Source: Auanema rhodensis (taxonomy: Eukaryota; Animalia; Nematoda). From it: 64,000 bases of DNA. Below, piece by piece: positions 9,001 through 61,750 of this stretch. The stretch's first letter is position 1; each line of letters opens with the position of its first letter. Both the position numbers and the translations under genes were made by a program. The stretch spans positions 62,001 through 126,000 of the forward strand of contig CAXKVF010000092.1 of the NCBI GenBank assembly GCA_964057225.1. The letters are read 5' to 3'. The notes beneath the pieces are model-generated. The model was given only the letters and a program-made list of their open reading frames with translations. It did not search any database and had not been told where the DNA came from.

Positions 9001-10902
9001 AAGAGATGCGGTTTTCAAAATTAGATTCCCCATGTCCATATTAGTCTAAAAACAAATTTTTATTGATATTGGTGCATGGTAACCATGACTTTGAAAGTTA
9101 CGTGAACTTTAATTTATGCTAATTAAATGTACACGTGATGTGCACTTGGTATGTAACTCGCTTCACTTGAATGATAAAGAGATGCGGTTTTCAAAATTAG
9201 ATTCCCCATGTCCATATTAGTCTAAAAACAAATTTTTATTGATATTGGTTCATGGTAACCATGACTTTGAAATTTACGTGAACTTTAATTTATGCTAATT
9301 AAATGTACACGTGATGTGCACTTGGTATGTAACTCGCTTCACGTGAATGATAAAGAGATGCGGTTTTCAAAATTAGATTCCCCATGTCCATATTAGTCTA
9401 AAAACAAATTATTATTGATATTGGTGCATGGTAACCATGACTTTGAAAGTTACGTGAACTTTAATTTATGCTAATTAAATGTACACGTGATGTGCACTTG
9501 GTATGTAACTCGCTTCACTTGAAAGATAAAGAGATGCGGTTTTCAAAATTAGATTCCCCATGTCCATATTAGTCTAAAAACAAATTTTTATTGATATTGG
9601 TTCATGGTAACCATGACTTTGAAATTTACGTGAACTTTAATTTATGCTAATTAAATGTACACGTGATGTGCACTTGGTATGTAACTCGCTTCACGTGAAA
9701 GATAAAGAGATGTGGTTTTCAAAATTAGAATCCCCATGTCCATATTAGTCTAAAAACAAATTTTTATTGATATTGGTGCATGGTAACCATGACTTTGAAA
9801 TTTACGTGAACTTTAATTTATGCTAATTAAATGTACACGTGATGTGCACTTGGTATGTAACTCTCTTCACGTGAAAGATAAAGAGATGCGGTTTTCAAAA
9901 TTAGATTCCCCATGTCCATATTAGTCTAAAAACAAATTTTTATTGATATTGGTTCATGGTAACCATGACTTTGAAATTTACGTGAACTTTAATTTATGCT
10001 AATTAAATGTGCACGTGATGTGCACTTGGTATGTAACTCGCTTCACGTGAAAGATAAAGAGATGCGGTTTTCAAAATTAGATTCCCCATGTCCATATTAG
10101 TCTAAAAACAAATTTTTATTGATATTGGTGCATGGTAACCATGACTTTGAAATTTACGTGAACTTTAATTTATGCTAATTAAATGTACACGTGATGTGCA
10201 CTTGGTATGTAACTCGCTTCACGTGAAAGATGAAGAGATGCGGTTTGCAAAATTAGATTCCCCATGTCCATATTAGTCTAAAAACAAATTTTTATTGACA
10301 TTGGTGCATGGTAACCATGACTTTGAAATTTACGTGAACTTTAATTTATGCTAATTAAATGTACACGTGATGTGCACTTGGTATGTAACTCGCTTCACGT
10401 GAAAGATAAAGAGATGCGGTTTTCAAAATTAGATTCCCCATGTCCATATTAGTCTAAAAACAAATTTTTATTGATATTGGTGCATGGTAACCATGACTTT
10501 GAAATTTACGTGAACTTTAATTTATGCTAATTAAATGTACACGTGATGTGCACTTGGTATGTAACTCGCTTCACGTGAATGATAAAGAGATGCGGTTTTC
10601 AAAATTAGATTCCCCATGTCCATATTAGTCTAAAAACAAATTATTATTGATATTGGTGCATGGTAACCATGACTTTGAAAGTTACGTGAACTTTAATTTA
10701 TGCTAATTAAATGTACACGTGATGTGCACTTGGTATGTAACTCGCTTCACGTGAAAGATAAAGAGATGCGGTTTTCAAAATTAGATTCCCCATGTCCATA
10801 TTAGTCTAAAAACAAATTTTTATTGATATTGGTTCATGGTAACCATGACTTTGAAATTTACGTGAACTTTAATTTATGCTAATTAAATGTACACGTGATG
10901 TG

Positions 10903-19900: not shown

Positions 19901-22900
19901 ACGTGAACTTTAATTTATGCTAATTAAATGTGCACGTGATGTGCACTTGGTATGTAACTCGCTTCACGTGAAAGATAAAGAGATGCGGTTCTCAAAATTA
20001 GATTCCCCATGTCCATATTAGTCTAAAAACAAATTTTTATTGATATTGGTGCATGGTAACCATGACTTTGAAATTTACGTGAACTTTAATTTATGCTAAT
20101 TAAATGTACACGTGATGTGCACTTGGTATGTAACTCGCTTCACGTGAAAGATGAAGAGATGCGGTTTGCAAAATTAGATTCCCCATGTCCATATTAGTCT
20201 AAAAACAAATTTTTATTGACATTGGTGCATGGTAACCATGACTTTGAAATTTACGTGAACTTTAATTTATGATAATTAAATGTACACGTGATGTGCACTT
20301 GGTATGTAACTCGCTTCACGTGAAAGATAAAGAGATGCGGTTTTCAAAATTAGATTCCCCATGTCCATATTAGTCTAAAAACAAATTTTTATTGATATTG
20401 GTGCATGGTAACCATGACTTTGAAATTTACGTGAACTTTAATTTATGCTAATTAAATGTACACGTGATGTGCACTTGGTATGTAACTCGCTTCACGTGAA
20501 TGATAAAGAGATGCGGTTTTCAAAATTAGATTCCCCATGTCCATATTAGTCTAAAAACAAATTTTTATTGATATTGGTGCATGGTAACCATGACTTTGAA
20601 AGTTACGTGAACTTTAATTTATGCTAATTAAATGTACACGTGATGTGCACTTGGTATGTAACTCGCTTCACGTGAAAGATAAAGAGATGCGGTTTTCAAA
20701 ATTAGATTCCCCATGTCCATATTAGTCTAAAAACAAATTTTTATTGATATTGGTTCATGGTAACCATGACTTTGAAATTTACGTGAACTTTAATTTATGC
20801 TAATTAAATGTACACGTGATGTGCACTTGGTATGTAACTCGCTTCACTTGGTATGTAACTCGCTTCACGTGAAAGATGAAGAGATGCGGTTTTCAAAATT
20901 AGATTCCCCATGTCCATATTAGTCTAAAAACAAATTTTTATTGATATTGGTGCATGGTAACCATGACTTTGAAAGTTACGTGAACTTTAATTTATGCTAA
21001 TTAAATGTACACGTGATGTGCACTTGGTATGTAACTCGCTTCACGTGAATGATAAAGAGATGCGGTTTTCAAAATTAGATTCCCCATGTCCATATTAGTC
21101 TAAAAACAAATTTTTATTGATATTGGTGCATGGTAACCATGACTTTGAAAGTTACGTGAACTTTAATTTATGCTAATTAAATGTACACGTGATGTGCACT
21201 TGGTATGTAACTCGCTTCACGTGAAAGATAAAGAGATGCGGTTTTCAAAATTAGATTCCCCATGTCCATATTAGTCTAAAAACAAATTTTTATTGATATT
21301 GGTGCATGGTAACCATGACTTTGAAATTTACGTGAACTTTAATTTATGCTAATTAAATGTACACGTGATGTGCACTTGGTATGTAACTCGCTTCACTTGG
21401 TATGTAACTCGCTTCACGTGAAAGATGAAGAGATGCGGTTTTCAAAATTAGATTCCCCATGTCCATATTAGTCTAAAAACAAATTTTTATTGATATTGGT
21501 GCATGGTAACCATGACTTTGAAATTTACGTGAACTTTAATTTATGCTAATTAAATGTACACGTGATGTGCACTTGGTATGTAACTCGCTTCACGTGAAAG
21601 ATAAAGAGATGCGGTTTTCAAAATTAGATTCCCCATGTCCATATTAGTCTAAAAACAAATTTTTATTGATATTGGTGCATGGTAACCATGACTTTGAAAT
21701 TTACGTGAACTTTAATTTATGCTAATTAAATGTACACGTGATGTGCACTTGGTATGTAACTCGCTTCACGTGAAAGATAAAGAGATGCGGTTTTCAAAAT
21801 TAGATTCCCCATGTCCATATTAGTCTAAAAACAAATTTTTATTGATATTGGTGCATGGTAACCATGACTTTGAAATTTACGTGAACTTTAATTTATGCTA
21901 ATTAAATGTACACGTGATGTGCACTTGGTATGTAACTCGCTTCACGTGAAAGATAAAGAGATGCGGTTTTCAAAATTAGATTCCCCATGTCCATATTAGT
22001 CTAAAAACAAATTTTTATTGATATTGGTGCATGGTAACCATGACTTTGAAATTTACGTGAACTTTAATTTATGCTAATTAAATGTACACGTGATGTGCAC
22101 TTGGTATGTAACTCGCTTCACGTGAAAGATAAAGAGATGCGGTTTTCAAAATTAGATTCCCCATGTCCATATTAGTCTAAAAACAAATTTTTATAGATAT
22201 TGGTGCATGGTAACCATGACTTTGAAATTTACGTGAACTTTAATTTATGCTAATTAAATGTACACGTGATGTGCACTTGGTATGTAACTCGCTTCACGTG
22301 AAAGATAAAGAGATGCGGTTTTCAAAATTAGATTCCCCATGTCCATATTAGTCTAAAAACAAATTTTTATTGATATTGGTGCATGGTAACCATGACTTTG
22401 AAATTTACGTGAACTTTAATTTATGCTAATTAAATGTACACGTGATGTGCACTTGGTATGTAACTCGCTTCACTTGGTATGTAACTCGCTTCACGTGAAA
22501 GATGAAGAGATGCGGTTTTCAAAATTAGATTCCCCATGTCCATATTAGTCTAAAAACAAATTTTTATTGATATTGGTGCATGGTAACCATGACTTTGAAA
22601 TTTACGTGAACTTTAATTTATGCTAATTAAATGTACACGTGATGTGCACTTGGTATGTAACTCGCTTCACGTGAAAGATAAAGAGATGCGGTTTTCAAAA
22701 TTAGATTCCCCATGTCCATATTAGTCTAAAAACAAATTTTTATTGATATTGGTGCATGGTAACCATGACTTTGAAATTTACGTGAACTTTAATTTATGCT
22801 AATTAAATGTACACGTGATGTGCACTTGGTATGTAACTCGCTTCACGTGAAAGATAAAGAGATGCGGTTTTCAAAATTAGATTCCCCATGTCCATATTAG

Positions 22901-24574
22901 TCTAAAAACAAATTTTTATTGATATTGGTGCATGGTAACCATGACTTTGAAATTTACGTGAACTTTAATTTATGCTAATTAAATGTACACGTGATGTGCA
23001 CTTGGTATGTAACTCGCTTCACGTGAAAGATAAAGAGATGCGGTTTTCAAAATTAGATTCCCCATGTCCATATTAGTCTAAAAACAAATTTTTATTGATA
23101 TTGGTGCATGGTAACCATGACTTTGAAATTTACGTGAACTTTAATTTATGCTAATTAAATGTACACGTGATGTGCACTTGGTATGTAACTCGCTTCACGT
23201 GAAAGATAAAGAGATGCGGTTTTCAAAATTAGATTCCCCATGTCCATATTAGTCTAAAAACAAATTTTTATAGATATTGGTGCATGGTAACCATGACTTT
23301 GAAATTTACGTGAACTTTAATTTATGCTAATTAAATGTACACGTGATGTGCACTTGGTATGTAACTCGCTTCACGTGAAAGATAAAGAGATGCGGTTTTC
23401 AAAATTAGATTCCCCATGTCCATATTAGTCTAAAAACAAATTTTTATTGATATTGGTGCATGGTAACCATGACTTTGAAATTTACGTGAACTTTAATTTA
23501 TGCTAATTAAATGTACACGTGATGTGCACTTGGTATGTAACTCGCTTCACGTGAAAGATAAAGAGATGCGGTTTTCAAAATTAGATTCCCCATGTCCATA
23601 TTAGTCTAAAAACAAATTTTTATTGATATTGGTGCATGGTAACCATGACTTTGAAATTTACGTGAACTTTAATTTATGCTAATTAAATGTACACGTGATG
23701 TGCACTTGGTATGTAACTCGCTTCACTTGGTATGTAACTCGCTTCACGTGAAAGATAAAGAGATGCGGTTTTCAAAATTAGATTCCCCATGTCCATATTA
23801 GTCTAAAAACAAATTTTTATTGATATTGGTGCATGGTAACCATGACTTTGAAATTTACGTGAACTTTAATTTATGCTAATTAAATGTACACGTGATGTGC
23901 ACTTGGTATGTAACTCGCTTCACGTGAAAGATAAAGAGATGCGGTTTTCAAAATTAGATTCCCCATGTCCATATTAGTCTAAAAACAAATTTTTATTGAT
24001 ATTGGTGCATGGTAACCATGACTTTGAAATTTACGTGAACTTTAATTTATGCTAATTAAATGTACACGTGATGTGCACTTGGTATGTAACTCGCTTCACT
24101 TGGTATGTAACTCGCTTCACGTGAAAGATAAAGAGATGCGGTTTTCAAAATTAGATTCCCCATGTCCATATTAGTCTAAAAACAAATTTTTATTGATATT
24201 GGTGCATGGTAACCATGACTTTGAAATTTACGTGAACTTTAATTTATGCTAATTAAATGTACACGTGATGTGCACTTGGTATGTAACTCGCTTCACGTGA
24301 AAGATAAAGAGATGCGGTTTTCAAAATTAGATTCCCCATGTCCATATTAGTCTAAAAACAAATTTTTATTGATATTGGTTCATGGTAACCATGACTTTGA
24401 AATTTACGTGAACTTTAATTTATGCTAATTAAATGTACACGTGATGTGCACTTGGTATGTAACTCGCTTCACGTGAAAGATAAAGAGATGCGGTTTTCAA
24501 AATTAGATTCCCCATGTCCATATTAGTCTAAAAACAAATTTTTATTGATATTGGTGCATGGTAACCATGACTTT

Positions 24575-24610
24575 GAAAGTTACGTGAACTTTAATTTATG
24601 CTAATTAAAT
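24575..24610 (+). repeat. Left copy of the 36-bp target-site-like direct duplication flanking inverted block 1
   Basis: GAAAGTTACGTGAACTTTAATTTATGCTAATTAAAT, carrying the minor GAAAGTT allele, ends at the left junction and recurs at 25807-25842. Confidence 0.85.
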
Positions 24611-25806
24611 CCAATATCAATAAAAATTTGTTTTTAGACTAATATGGACATGGGGAATCTAATTTTGAAAACCGCATCTCTTTATCTTTCACGTGAAGCG
24701 AGTTACATACCAAGTGAAGCGAGTTACATACCAAGTGCACATCACGTGTACATTTAATTAGCATAAATTAAAGTTCACGTAAATTTCAAAGTCATGGTTA
24801 CCATGCACCAATATCAATAAAAATTTGTTTTTAGACTAATATGGACATGGGGAATCTAATTTTGAAAACCGCATCTCTTTATCTTTCACGTGAAGCGAGT
24901 TACATACCAAGTGCACATCACGTGTACATTTAATTAGCATAAATTAAAGTTCACGTAAATTTCAAAGTCATGGTTACCATGCACCAATATCAATAAAAAT
25001 TTGTTTTTAGACTAATATGGACATGGGGAATCTAATTTTGAAAACCGCATCTCTTTATCTTTCACGTGAAGCGAGTTACATACCAAGTGAAGCGAGTTAC
25101 ATACCAAGTGCACATCACGTGTACATTTAATTAGCATAAATTAAAGTTCACGTAAATTTCAAAGTCATGGTTACCATGCACCAATATCAATAAAAATTTG
25201 TTTTTAGACTAATATGGACATGGGGAATCTAATTTTGAAAACCGCATCTCTTTATCTTTCACGTGAAGCGAGTTACATACCAAGTGCACATCACGTGTAC
25301 ATTTAATTAGCATAAATTAAAGTTCACGTAAATTTCAAAGTCATGGTTACCATGCACCAATATCAATAAAAATTTGTTTTTAGACTAATATGGACATGGG
25401 GAATCTAATTTTGAAAACCGCATCTCTTTATCTTTCACGTGAAGCGAGTTACATACCAAGTGCACATCACGTGTACATTTAATTAGCATAAATTAAAGTT
25501 CACGTAAATTTCAAAGTCATGGTTACCATGCACCAATATCTATAAAAATTTGTTTTTAGACTAATATGGACATGGGGAATCTAATTTTGAAAACCGCATC
25601 TCTTTATCTTTCACGTGAAGCGAGTTACATACTAAGTGCACATCACGTGTACATTTAATTAGCATAAATTAAAGTTCACGTAAATTTCAAAGTCATGGTT
25701 ACCATGCACCAATATCAATAAAAATTTGTTTTTAGACTAATATGGACATGGGGAATCTAATTTTGAAAACCGCATCTCTTTATCTTTCACGTGAAGCGAG
25801 TTACAT
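24611..25806 (-). repeat. Inverted satellite block 1 (1,196 bp, about 6.5 monomers)
   Basis: After ...CTAATTAAAT (24610) the sequence switches to CCAATATCAATAAAAATTTG, the reverse complement of the monomer. It returns to forward orientation after ...GCGAGTTACAT (25806). Confidence 0.98.
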
Positions 25807-25842
25807 GAAAGTTACGTGAACTTTAATTTATGCTAATTAAAT
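25807..25842 (+). repeat. Right copy of the 36-bp target-site-like direct duplication flanking inverted block 1
   Basis: Identical to 24575-24610 including the minor G allele. The same arrangement flanks block 2 (27609-27644 and 28841-28876). Confidence 0.85.
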
Positions 25843-27644
25843 GTACACGTGATGTGCACTTGGTATGTAACTCGCTTCACGTGAAAGATAAAGAGATGCG
25901 GTTTTCAAAATTAGATTCCCCATGTCCATATTAGTCTAAAAACAAATTTTTATTGATATTGGTGCATGGTAACCATGACTTTGAAATTTACGTGAACTTT
26001 AATTTATGCTAATTAAATGTACACGTGATGTGCACTTGGTATGTAACTCGCTTCACGTGAAAGATAAAGAGATGCGGTTTTCAAAATTAGATTCCCCATG
26101 TCCATATTAGTCTAAAAACAAATTTTTATTGATATTGGTGCATGGTAACCATGACTTTGAAATTTACGTGAACTTTAATTTATGCTAATTAAATGTACAC
26201 GTGATGTGCACTTGGTATGTAACTCGCTTCACGTGAAAGATAAAGAGATGCGGTTTTCAAAATTAGATTCCCCATGTCCATATTAGTCTAAAAACAAATT
26301 TTTATAGATATTGGTGCATGGTAACCATGACTTTGAAATTTACGTGAACTTTAATTTATGCTAATTAAATGTACACGTGATGTGCACTTGGTATGTAACT
26401 CGCTTCACGTGAAAGATAAAGAGATGCGGTTTTCAAAATTAGATTCCCCATGTCCATATTAGTCTAAAAACAAATTTTTATTGATATTGGTGCATGGTAA
26501 CCATGACTTTGAAATTTACGTGAACTTTAATTTATGCTAATTAAATGTACACGTGATGTGCACTTGGTATGTAACTCGCTTCACGTGAAAGATAAAGAGA
26601 TGCGGTTTTCAAAATTAGATTCCCCATGTCCATATTAGTCTAAAAACAAATTTTTATTGATATTGGTGCATGGTAACCATGACTTTGAAATTTACGTGAA
26701 CTTTAATTTATGCTAATTAAATGTACACGTGATGTGCACTTGGTATGTAACTCGCTTCACTTGGTATGTAACTCGCTTCACGTGAAAGATAAAGAGATGC
26801 GGTTTTCAAAATTAGATTCCCCATGTCCATATTAGTCTAAAAACAAATTTTTATTGATATTGGTGCATGGTAACCATGACTTTGAAATTTACGTGAACTT
26901 TAATTTATGCTAATTAAATGTACACGTGATGTGCACTTGGTATGTAACTCGCTTCACGTGAAAGATAAAGAGATGCGGTTTTCAAAATTAGATTCCCCAT
27001 GTCCATATTAGTCTAAAAACAAATTTTTATTGATATTGGTGCATGGTAACCATGACTTTGAAATTTACGTGAACTTTAATTTATGCTAATTAAATGTACA
27101 CGTGATGTGCACTTGGTATGTAACTCGCTTCACTTGGTATGTAACTCGCTTCACGTGAAAGATAAAGAGATGCGGTTTTCAAAATTAGATTCCCCATGTC
27201 CATATTAGTCTAAAAACAAATTTTTATTGATATTGGTGCATGGTAACCATGACTTTGAAATTTACGTGAACTTTAATTTATGCTAATTAAATGTACACGT
27301 GATGTGCACTTGGTATGTAACTCGCTTCACGTGAAAGATAAAGAGATGCGGTTTTCAAAATTAGATTCCCCATGTCCATATTAGTCTAAAAACAAATTTT
27401 TATTGATATTGGTTCATGGTAACCATGACTTTGAAATTTACGTGAACTTTAATTTATGCTAATTAAATGTACACGTGATGTGCACTTGGTATGTAACTCG
27501 CTTCACGTGAAAGATAAAGAGATGCGGTTTTCAAAATTAGATTCCCCATGTCCATATTAGTCTAAAAACAAATTTTTATTGATATTGGTGCATGGTAACC
27601 ATGACTTTGAAAGTTACGTGAACTTTAATTTATGCTAATTAAAT
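25807..27644 (+). repeat. 176-bp satellite, forward block between the two inverted blocks
   Basis: Forward monomers whose variants (TATAGAT at 26306, 21-bp duplications at 26737 and 27110) repeat those at 23272, 23703 and 24076 with a 3,034-bp offset. Confidence 0.97.
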
Positions 27645-28840
27645 CCAATATCAATAAAAATTTGTTTTTAGACTAATATGGACATGGGGAATCTAATTTT
27701 GAAAACCGCATCTCTTTATCTTTCACGTGAAGCGAGTTACATACCAAGTGAAGCGAGTTACATACCAAGTGCACATCACGTGTACATTTAATTAGCATAA
27801 ATTAAAGTTCACGTAAATTTCAAAGTCATGGTTACCATGCACCAATATCAATAAAAATTTGTTTTTAGACTAATATGGACATGGGGAATCTAATTTTGAA
27901 AACCGTATCTCTTTATCTTTCACGTGAAGCGAGTTACATACCAAGTGCACATCACGTGTACATTTAATTAGCATAAATTAAAGTTCACGTAAATTTCAAA
28001 GTCATGGTTACCATGCACCAATATCAATAAAAATTTGTTTTTAGACTAATATGGACATGGGGAATCTAATTTTGAAAACCGCATCTCTTTATCTTTCACG
28101 TGAAGCGAGTTACATACCAAGTGAAGCGAGTTACATACCAAGTGCACATCACGTGTACATTTAATTAGCATAAATTAAAGTTCACGTAAATTTCAAAGTC
28201 ATGGTTACCATGCACCAATATCAATAAAAATTTGTTTTTAGACTAATATGGACATGGGGAATCTAATTTTGAAAACCGCATCTCTTTATCTTTCACGTGA
28301 AGCGAGTTACATACCAAGTGCACATCACGTGTACATTTAATTAGCATAAATTAAAGTTCACGTAAATTTCAAAGTCATGGTTACCATGCACCAATATCAA
28401 TAAAAATTTGTTTTTAGACTAATATGGACATGGGGAATCTAATTTTGAAAACCGCATCTCTTTATCTTTCACGTGAAGCGAGTTACATACCAAGTGCACA
28501 TCACGTGTACATTTAATTAGCATAAATTAAAGTTCACGTAAATTTCAAAGTCATGGTTACCATGCACCAATATCTATAAAAATTTGTTTTTAGACTAATA
28601 TGGACATGGGGAATCTAATTTTGAAAACCGCATCTCTTTATCTTTCACGTGAAGCGAGTTACATACCAAGTGCACATCACGTGTACATTTAATTAGCATA
28701 AATTAAAGTTCACGTAAATTTCAAAGTCATGGTTACCATGCACCAATATCAATAAAAATTTGTTTTTAGACTAATATGGACATGGGGAATCTAATTTTGA
28801 AAACCGCATCTCTTTATCTTTCACGTGAAGCGAGTTACAT
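27645..28840 (-). repeat. Inverted satellite block 2 (1,196 bp, duplicate of block 1)
   Basis: Same junctions (AAAT|CCAATATC and GTTACAT|GAAAGTTACG) and same length as block 1, shifted by 3,034 bp. Confidence 0.98.
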
Positions 28841-29449
28841 GAAAGTTACGTGAACTTTAATTTATGCTAATTAAATGTACACGTGATGTGCACTTGGTAT
28901 GTAACTCGCTTCACGTGAAAGATAAAGAGATGCGGTTTTCAAAATTAGATTCCCCATGTCCATATTAGTCTAAAAACAAATTTTTATTGATATTGGTGCA
29001 TGGTAACCATGACTTTGAAATTTACGTGAACTTTAATTTATGCTAATTAAATGTACACGTGATGTGCACTTGGTATGTAACTCGCTTCACTTGGTATGTA
29101 ACTCGCTTCACGTGAAAGATGAAGAGATGCGGTTTTCAAAATTAGATTCCCCATGTCCATATTAGTCTAAAAACAAATTTTTATTGATATTGGTGCATGG
29201 TAACCATGACTTTGAAATTTACGTGAACTTTAATTTATGCTAATTAAATGTACACGTGATGTGCACTTGGTATGTAACTCGCTTCACGTGAAAGATAAAG
29301 AGATGCGGTTTTCAAAATTAGATTCCCCATGTCCATATTAGTCTAAAAACAAATTTTTATTGATATTGGTGCATGGTAACCATGACTTTGAAATTTACGT
29401 GAACTTTAATTTATGCTAATTAAATGTACACGTGATGTGCACTTGGTAT

Positions 29450-29719
29450 GTAACTCGCTTCACGTGAAAGATAAAGAGATGCGGTTTTCAAAATTAGATT
29501 CCCCATGTCCATATTAGTCTAAAAACAAATTTTTATTGATATTGGTGCATGGTAACCATGACTTTGAAAGAGATGCGGTTTTCAAAATTAGATTCCCCAT
29601 GTCCATATTAGTCTAAAAACAAATTTTTATTGGTATTGGTGCATGGTAACCATGACTTTGAAATTTACGTGAACTTTAATTTATGCTAATTAAATGTACA
29701 CGTGATGTGCACTTGGTAT
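29450..29719 (+). other. Fused dimer with an 82-bp deletion (monomer positions 121-176 plus 1-26)
   Basis: ACTTTGAAA is joined directly to GAGATGCGG at 29569/29570. Monomer starts at 29450 and 29720 are 270 bp apart (352-82). Confidence 0.95.
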
Positions 29720-59700: not shown

Positions 59701-61750
59701 TATTAGTCTAAAAACAAATTTTTATTGATATTGGTGCATGGTAACCATGACTTTGAAATTTACGTGAACTTTAATTTATGCTAATTAAATGTACACGTGA
59801 TGTGCACTTGGTATGTAACTCGCTTCACGTGAAAGATAAAGAGATGCGGTTTTCAAAATTAGATTCCCCATGTCCATATTAGTCTAAAAACAAATTTTTA
59901 TTGATATTGGTGCATGGTAACCATGACTTTGAAATTTACGTGAACTTTAATTTATGCTAATTAAATGTACACGTGATGTGCACTTGGTATGTAACTCGCT
60001 TCACGTGAAAGATAAAGAGATGCGGTTTTCAAAATTAGATTCCCCATGTCCATATTAGTCTAAAAACAAATTTTTATTGATATTGGTGCATGGTAACCAT
60101 GACTTTGAAATTTACGTGAACTTTAATTTATGCTAATTAAATGTACACGTGATGTGCACTTGGTATGTAACTCGCTTCACGTGAAAGATGAAGAGATGCG
60201 GTTTTCAAAATTAGATTCCCCATGTCTATATTAGTCTAAAAACAAATTTTTATTGATATTGGTGCATGGTAACCATGACTTTGAAATTTACGTGAACTTT
60301 AATTTATGCTAATTAAATGTACACGTGATGTGCACTTGGTATGTAACTCGCTTCACGTGAAAGATAAAGAGATGCGGTTTTCAAAATTAGATTCCCCATG
60401 TCCATATTAGTCTAAAAACAAATTTTTATTGATATTGGTGCATGGTAACCATGACTTTGAAATTTACGTGAACTTTAATTTATGCTAATTAAATGTACAC
60501 GTGATGTGCACTTGGTATGTAACTCGCTTCACGTGAAAGATGAAGAGATGCGGTTTTCAAAATTAGATTCCCCATGTCTATATTAGTCTAAAAACAAATT
60601 TTTATTGATATTGGTGCATGGTAACCATGACTTTGAAATTTACGTGAACTTTAATTTATGCTAATTAAATGTACACGTGATGTGCACTTGGTATGTAACT
60701 CGCTTCACGTGAAAGATAAAGAGATGCGGTTTTCAAAATTAGATTCCCCATGTCCATATTAGTCTAAAAACAAATTTTTATTGATATTGGTGCATGGTAA
60801 CCATGACTTTGAAATTTACGTGAACTTTAATTTATGCTAATTAAATGTACACGTGATGTGCACTTGGTATGTAACTCGCTTCACGTGAAAGATAAAGAGA
60901 TGCGGTTTTCAAAATTAGATTCCCCATGTCCATATTAGTCTAAAAACAAATTTTTATTGATATTGGTTCATGGTAACCATGACTTTGAAATTTACGTGAA
61001 CTTTAATTTATGCTAATTAAATGTACACGTGATGTGCACTTGGTATGTAACTCGCTTCACGTGAAAGATAAAGAGATGCGGTTTTCAAAATTAGATTCCC
61101 CATGTCCATATTAGTCTAAAAACAAATTTTTATTGATATTGGTGCATGGTAACCATGACTTTGAAATTTACGTGAACTTTAATTTATGCTAATTAAATGT
61201 ACACGTGATGTGCACTTGGTATGTAACTCGCTTCACGTGAAAGATAAAGAGATGCGGTTTTCAAAATTAGATTCCCCATGTCCATATTAGTCTAAAAACA
61301 AATTTTTATTGATATTGGTTCATGGTAACCATGACTTTGAAATTTACGTGAACTTTAATTTATGCTAATTAAATGTACACGTGATGTGCACTTGGTATGT
61401 AACTCGCTTCACGTGAAAGATAAAGAGATGCGGTTTTCAAAATTAGATTCCCCATGTCCATATTAGTCTAAAAACAAATTTTTATTGATATTGATGCATG
61501 GTAACCATGACTTTGAAATTTACGTGAACTTTAATTTATGCTAATTAAATGTACACGTGATGTGCACTTGGTATGTAACTCGCTTCACGTGAAAGATAAA
61601 GAGATGCGGTTTTCAAAATTAGATTCCCCATGTCCATATTAGTCTAAAAACAAATTTTTATTGATATTGGTGCATGGTAACCATGACTTTGAAATTTACG
61701 TGAACTTTAATTTATGCTAATTAAATGTACACGTGATGTGCACTTGGTAT

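Follow-up and report, generated by a model that had tools for sequence, protein, structure and literature searches.

How an inverted block comes to lie within an otherwise head-to-tail satellite array, by being flipped in place or by being copied, is the question raised by 1196 bp of minus-strand satellite found at positions 24611-25806 of a germline contig of the nematode Auanema rhodense. The window, i.e. the whole 64-kb stretch of DNA that was analysed and to which coordinates refer unless stated otherwise, corresponds to positions 62001-126000 of an unplaced contig of 143,472 bp (C99) which is satellite from end to end. This contig belongs to the A. rhodense APS4 germline assembly, built from PacBio HiFi reads with hifiasm (180.9 Mb; bioRxiv 10.64898/2026.08.27.747507), and the assembly searched comprises 180,911,798 bases (~ 181 Mb) in 112 contigs. 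The entire window is a single tandem array with a monomer of 176 bp and a G+C content of 32%. The published 28-nt FISH probe for the AT-1 repeat (bioRxiv 10.64898/2026.08.27.747507) finds 334 matches in the window against 0 expected, hence, judging from this match, the array is the AT-1 satellite of A. rhodense and germline-restricted DNA. Indeed, AT-1 is autosome-terminal and is lost from somatic cells from the 12-cell stage onwards (bioRxiv 10.64898/2026.08.27.747507). Two other satellites were considered and discarded: the published Chironomus riparius primers for the chironomid telomere repeats, also of 176 bp, have no match to the monomer, and the 176-bp satellite of Bradysia does not match it either. 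A literal search of the literature for 19-mers of the monomer found none. The contig is not human DNA.

In order to place the block in the array, the region was split into monomers against a consensus of 316 monomers, and positions within the monomer are given below as phases. Among these 316 monomers phase 158 shows a frequent T/G polymorphism (T in 97, G in 219), and 84G, 86G and 23A are other recurrent variants. The tandem repeat finder (TRF) scores a 352-bp period nearly as high as the 176-bp one, suggesting that parts of the array may have a dimeric higher-order organisation. On the chromosome-scale contig C1, among the matches listed, AT-1 spans from ~ 1 kb to 0.8 Mb, from 18.1 to 18.26 Mb and from 23.09 to 24.65 Mb; the left-end monomers are in minus-strand orientation and those between ~ 23.25 Mb and the right end in plus-strand orientation, the final minus-strand match listed being at 23,094,155. 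The AT-1 arrays of C1 thus seem to be mirror-oriented toward both chromosome ends.

When the reverse complement of 24611-25806 (hereafter INV1, 1196 bp or 6.56 monomers) is laid without gaps on the forward sequence at 23007-24202 (S1), a single mismatch is found in 1196 positions (25633 opposite 23180, a substitution private to INV1). The same score, likewise one mismatch in 1196, is obtained with a second copy of this donor at 26041-27236 (S2), so that the two segments which the original prediction had proposed as best match are tied, while the next best ungapped placement of INV1 in the window has 76 mismatches. Furthermore, genome-wide BLAST, with 40 candidates scored, ranks S1 and S2 (1 mismatch) before a second inverted block described below, INV2 (2 mismatches), followed by sequences of 98% identity with a 21-bp gap; a better donor elsewhere, the possibility raised against the proposed copy, was found nowhere among these 40 candidates. 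INV1 also mirrors the donor in the order of its rare variants, namely a 148A monomer (the one carrying TATAGAT) and two 197-bp monomers without 84G (the GATAAA allele), in keeping with the agreement in length and variant order first noticed. Every other 197-bp monomer of C99 has 84G, and the two lacking it are private to this locus. A match of this kind is far beyond chance.

The donor S1 lies on the forward strand from phase 59 to phase 156 six monomers on. It is intact and in register with the neighbouring monomers, and the expectation that the source would still be present, ending 408 bp upstream of the insertion, was borne out: the spacer between donor end and insertion point occupies 24203-24610. 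The marks of a simple reciprocal inversion, which had been rejected from the start, are indeed absent at this locus, for the forward donor remains in place and the junctions join phases that are out of register (36|156 on the left and 59|1 on the right). INV1 is, on the letters of the assembly, a copy and not a flip.

As a side observation, monomers of 197 bp, which carry an internal 21-bp tandem duplication after phase 50, are found at 10853, 17738, 18465, 20774, 21323, 22400, 23653, 24026, 26687, 27060 and 29017; the spacings of 549, 725 and 1253 bp at which they reappear define local higher-order units. Contigs C100 and C4 contain many copies of this variant, always with 84G.

Both junctions can be read directly. 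On the left, the forward array breaks off between phases 36 and 37 of a monomer carrying the minor G allele, phases 1-36 of which occupy 24575-24610; on the right, the same 36-mer at 25807-25842 (forward strand) is the start of a full-length G-allele monomer. As both sides share the T at 25806, the direct repeat flanking INV1 is 36 bp long, or 37 bp with this T. Microhomology amounts to 0 nt at the left junction and to 1 nt (T) at the right one, both exactly as first described. By the standard formula, chance alone would give 0 nt at 56% and 1 nt at 28% of junctions, and a 0-nt junction is atypical for primer-template restart; at this level of homology, the joins resemble the products of end joining more than those of a restart primed by microhomology. 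Each of the two junction 25-mers has exactly two occurrences in the 181-Mb assembly, all of them in C99, and on this count the insertion event is private to this locus.

The monomer also holds CACGTGA and TCACGTG motifs (phases 40-46 and 71-77) that are predicted to form a DNA hairpin with a 7-bp stem and a 24-nt loop, for example at 21186-21223 (z = -2.5; 4 of 200 shuffles). Relative to this hairpin, the departure took place 3 nt ahead of the stem, at phase 36/37, and the donor begins inside the loop, at phase 59. This hairpin was dismissed as the cause of the departure point, as it is found in every monomer and explains nothing specific, and for the same reason its position relative to the junctions is probably a coincidence. 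Folding of the two donor-end regions gave structures no better than those of shuffled sequences.

Whether the 36-bp flank is a duplication is a more delicate matter. Since the monomer measures 176 bp, returning 36 bp behind the departure point or 140 bp ahead of it leads to the same phase. The 36-mer belongs to every G-allele monomer, hence identical flanks alone are no proof of duplication. Indeed, it may be that two adjacent G-allele monomers stood here originally and that nothing was duplicated, the inverted cis copy having taken the place of the terminal 140 bp of the upstream one, either by a switch and return in the order 3-2-1-4 of the four-point model discussed below or by end joining with deletion plus insertion. 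The G allele (phase 5) is carried by 18 of 343 forward monomers in the window and by 45 of 762 in C99. With the four flank copies left out, C99 has 37 runs of G-allele monomers, of which 33 are single and 4 double; the runs that stand before a 197-bp monomer comprise 3 single ones and 1 double. Both ratios argue against two adjacent G monomers at the site. However, the four double runs also provide precedents, the closest being at 20971/21147, 3.4 kb upstream of the site, where the pair is followed at 21323 by a 197-bp monomer with 84G; the insertion site likewise has a 197-bp, 84G monomer next downstream. The loss of 140 bp is further favoured by the human-chimpanzee short template switches, which are seen only with point 4 after point 1 (PMC5453318), and by worm mutation spectra, in which deletions are ~ 10 times commoner than duplications (PMC7368036).

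Overall, the G-run statistics favour a true 36-bp duplication over a 140-bp deletion only 3-8 fold, which makes the duplication probable but not proven, and we regard the replacement of 140 bp as unlikely though to be taken seriously. The original prediction of a direct duplication of 36-37 bp therefore holds as far as the same G-allele 36-mer (37-mer with the T) on both sides is concerned, while the duplication itself is no more than probable in view of the G-G pair at 20971/21147 and of the 4 double runs in 37. An uninterrupted empty-site paralogue was sought in the assembly and none was found. The right flank, including a 94-bp duplication described below, is unique in the assembly, whereas look-alikes of the left flank in C100 and C4 have another variant pattern, those in C100 containing no 197-bp monomers without 84G. 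The contexts of all 197-bp monomers in C99 are compatible with either a single or a double G.

The inserted block did not remain alone. From 22778 to 29090 the forward strand displays a tandem duplication of 2.08 units with a period of 3,034 bp, each unit consisting of 1838 bp in forward and 1196 bp in inverted orientation. The units differ at 2 positions only, 24872/27906 and 25633/28667, both of which lie within the inverted blocks; accordingly, identity at an offset of 3034 runs from 22778 to 24871, from 24873 to 25632 and from 25634 to 26056. The second unit holds S2 (forward strand), which is exactly identical to S1, and a second inverted insert, INV2, at 27645-28840 (minus strand), flanked by the 36-mer at 27609-27644 and 28841-28876. 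INV1 and INV2 carry one private substitution each, that of INV2 being at 27906. The junctions are identical in both cassettes, so that the insertion must have preceded the duplication, and the comparison of the two units shows the order of events to be insertion, then duplication, then substitutions.

The limits of the periodicity place the exchange in an identical tract of 245 bp, 25812-26056 on the forward strand, which is the same as 22778-23022 and 28846-29090. From these limits, the doubling must have occurred by unequal exchange between in-register monomers inside this tract. Unequal exchange is the ordinary route of satellite amplification. A single iterative event making both cassettes was considered and set aside, since two identical junctions would have had to be recreated and the copying of a finished cassette by unequal exchange is simpler. 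After the doubling, 23007-28840 contains four near-perfect inverted-repeat arms of 1196 bp (S1, INV1, S2 and INV2) separated by spacers of 408, 234 and 408 bp. A chain of such arms would be fragile in many organisms.

Taken as a whole, the locus behaves as a template-switch or templated-insertion event at the kb scale followed by unequal exchange. The account that we lean towards is a germline structural variant in two steps, in which a cis-templated inverted insertion with a 36-bp overlap was followed by doubling of the cassette through unequal exchange. In the first step, a single break-repair or replication accident would have left a free 3' end at phase 36/37 of the G-allele monomer. This end would have been joined to new DNA copied in reverse complement from 24202 back to 23007, starting 408 bp behind the break, the template being of the same polarity and belonging either to the end's own strand or to that of the sister. 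After 1196 nt, the new strand would have rejoined the forward array 36 bp behind its departure. If the duplication is real, such a return means that the ends must have overlapped, and it makes an ordinary fork switch-and-return a poor fit. The overlap may have come from a staggered break with protruding tails, or from a displaced nascent strand of the BIR type that re-engaged 36 nt back. The second step would have come soon after, while INV was still the exact reverse complement of S: unequal exchange between 22778-23022 and 25812-26056 would have doubled the 3,034-bp cassette, and each inverted copy would later have gained one substitution.

With regard to the template, the best-matching donor (40 candidates scored) lies only 408 bp off and inverted among ~ 10^5 or more AT-1 monomers, which indicates a template in cis. 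Concerning the enzymes, the picture is more conjectural. Typical inserts templated by polymerase theta measure tens of nt. The 1196-nt insert is far above this length, so a processive polymerase would have had to do the copying. For the joining, most end joining in the C. elegans germline goes through polymerase theta, which, unlike NHEJ, is needed there for deletions and tandem duplications with inserts templated nearby (PMC7368036); by analogy, theta-mediated end joining is the most plausible joining activity in this related nematode. In the list of mechanisms put forward at the outset, FoSTeS/MMBIR is not supported, the 0 and 1 nt of homology being what chance gives, and capture of a circle or of a cDNA is disfavoured, while repair of a staggered break or of overlapping ends with a templated insert in cis is viable. 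The locus alone cannot separate replication-based from end-joining routes.

Three further rearrangement scars of C99 are consistent with a background of end joining. At position 28804 of the contig, a tandem duplication of 96 bp covers phases 66-161 with 0 nt of homology, and at position 61630 of the contig, 41 bp (phases 118-158) are deleted with 4 nt of homology (CATG). The third, at 29390-29659 of the window (TRF 29473-29663), is a monomer of 270 bp in which 94 bp (phases 84-176 plus 1) are tandemly duplicated with 3 nt of homology (AAA); it has a single occurrence in the assembly, three monomers beyond the second cassette.

Given that C99 is unplaced and purely repetitive, the structure could in principle be an artefact, made by chimeric or fold-back reads or by a mis-join of the satellite contig. 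Inverted chimeras are a known class of artefact. However, two copies of the structure exist, each with a base difference of its own, and its 408-bp spacer and return junction are unlike the symmetric palindromes that arise from missed adapters. Moreover, the library was unamplified, sheared to ~ 15 kb and sequenced as HiFi reads to ~ 29x in repeat blocks (bioRxiv 10.64898/2026.08.27.747507), hence single reads can span the 6.3-kb complex, and hifiasm would be expected to require concordant overlapping reads. We thus take the assembly to be correct here and an artefact to be very unlikely.

Capture of a free fragment at a staggered break, whether an excised satellite circle, the cDNA of a satellite transcript or a piece of the sister chromatid or of another array, is highly improbable as well. 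It would agree with the junction homologies of 0 and 1 nt, which resemble blunt ligation, and with the target duplication expected from fill-in of a staggered break (PMC5730883), but the best donor (40 candidates scored, 181-Mb assembly) sits on the same molecule at a distance of 408 bp. A circle formed by recombination between monomers holds a whole number of monomers, while the insert amounts to 6.56 of them (1196 bp = 6 x 176 + 2 x 21 + 98, from phase 156 down to 59), which does not suit a circle (eccDNA). A cDNA made by target-primed reverse transcription carries an A-tail, and the insert has neither an A-tail nor any other mark of retroposition, and its donor is 408 bp away. Likewise, for a transposon or retroposon with target-site duplication, the insert is pure satellite and neither of its ends has an A-tail. 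Finally, a history in several steps, in which an inversion in place or a long fold-back palindrome was trimmed later by independent rearrangements, is extremely unlikely: an inversion would have removed the donor, yet the donor is intact; a second independent event 36 bp from the first junction is improbable; and INV was the exact reverse complement of S at the time of doubling.

We then compared the cis-templated insertion with known systems. In the four-point template-switch model (Loytynoja & Goldman 2017, PMC5453318; Ripley-type quasi-palindrome mutations), a nearby fragment, from point 2 to point 3, is reverse-complemented between two forward fragments and no prior inverted repeat is needed. 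The same is seen here, the 2->3 segment being a reverse-complement copy of nearby sequence, with point 1 at 24610, point 2 at 24202, point 3 at 23007 and point 4 at 24575, but over 1196 nt instead of tens of nt. If the flank is duplicated the order is 3-2-4-1, and if 140 bp were lost it is the classic 3-2-1-4; the alleles favour the former by the 3-8 fold given above. No short human-chimpanzee event had point 4 before point 1, the reason given being that such a return would require reopening of the new duplex (PMC5453318).

FoSTeS/MMBIR rearrangements (DUP-NML-INV/DUP and DUP-TRP/INV-DUP; PMC11293582) and ODIRA (PMC10766183) share with this locus the two switches, the inverted middle and, on the duplication reading, a flank that is doubled where the return precedes the departure. 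In contrast, the locus has no triplicated segment, no short inverted repeat and no microhomology of 2 nt or more, and is of kb scale where those events extend over tens of kb to Mb; at its junctions there are 0 and 1 nt in place of the ~ 2 nt or more typical of FoSTeS/MMBIR. A fold-back inverted duplication would also leave an inverted copy beside its donor, as found here with arms of 1196 bp, a 408-bp spacer and 1 mismatch, but here the arm gives way to forward array after 25806, which makes two junctions and not one.

Features in common are also found with polymerase-theta end joining in nematodes and mouse cells (PMC7368036, PMC5730883), where the insert is templated nearby, may be inverse, and a flank duplication of tens of bp is expected from protruding ends. 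The insert is matched in the immediate vicinity (PMC7368036), its donor ending 408 bp from the junction, and there is 1 nt of homology at one junction and 0 nt at the other; however, the insert is 20-100 times longer than usual theta inserts. Mixed-orientation blocks and inversions also occur within centromeric or other satellite arrays of complete assemblies. They resemble this locus in that a strand switch arose in a head-to-tail array and was later amplified within a larger unit, but here the donor, both junctions and the amplification are all readable at base resolution, and the DNA is not a centromere but germline-restricted DNA of a holocentric nematode.

The locus is thus a well-preserved case of a known kind of rearrangement and reveals no new mechanism. 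It records how a head-to-tail satellite gained an inverted block and then built a larger repeat unit from it, and it shows copying, not flipping, to be the origin of strand switches in this array. Presumably, long inverted repeats are tolerated in germline-restricted DNA. It is a speculative and rather doubtful extension that a recurrent process operates in the germline-restricted satellites of A. rhodense, in which overlapping ends of ~ 15-40 nt are repaired by backward copying of a nearby stretch and the resulting cassettes are quickly amplified, seeding higher-order repeats of mixed orientation. If this were true, with overlaps clustering genome-wide at small positive values and not spread uniformly over the monomer length, it would point to a defined break geometry acting on eliminated DNA. 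In any case, the locus adds a data point on the mutation of germline-restricted DNA, which this holocentric nematode eliminates from its soma.
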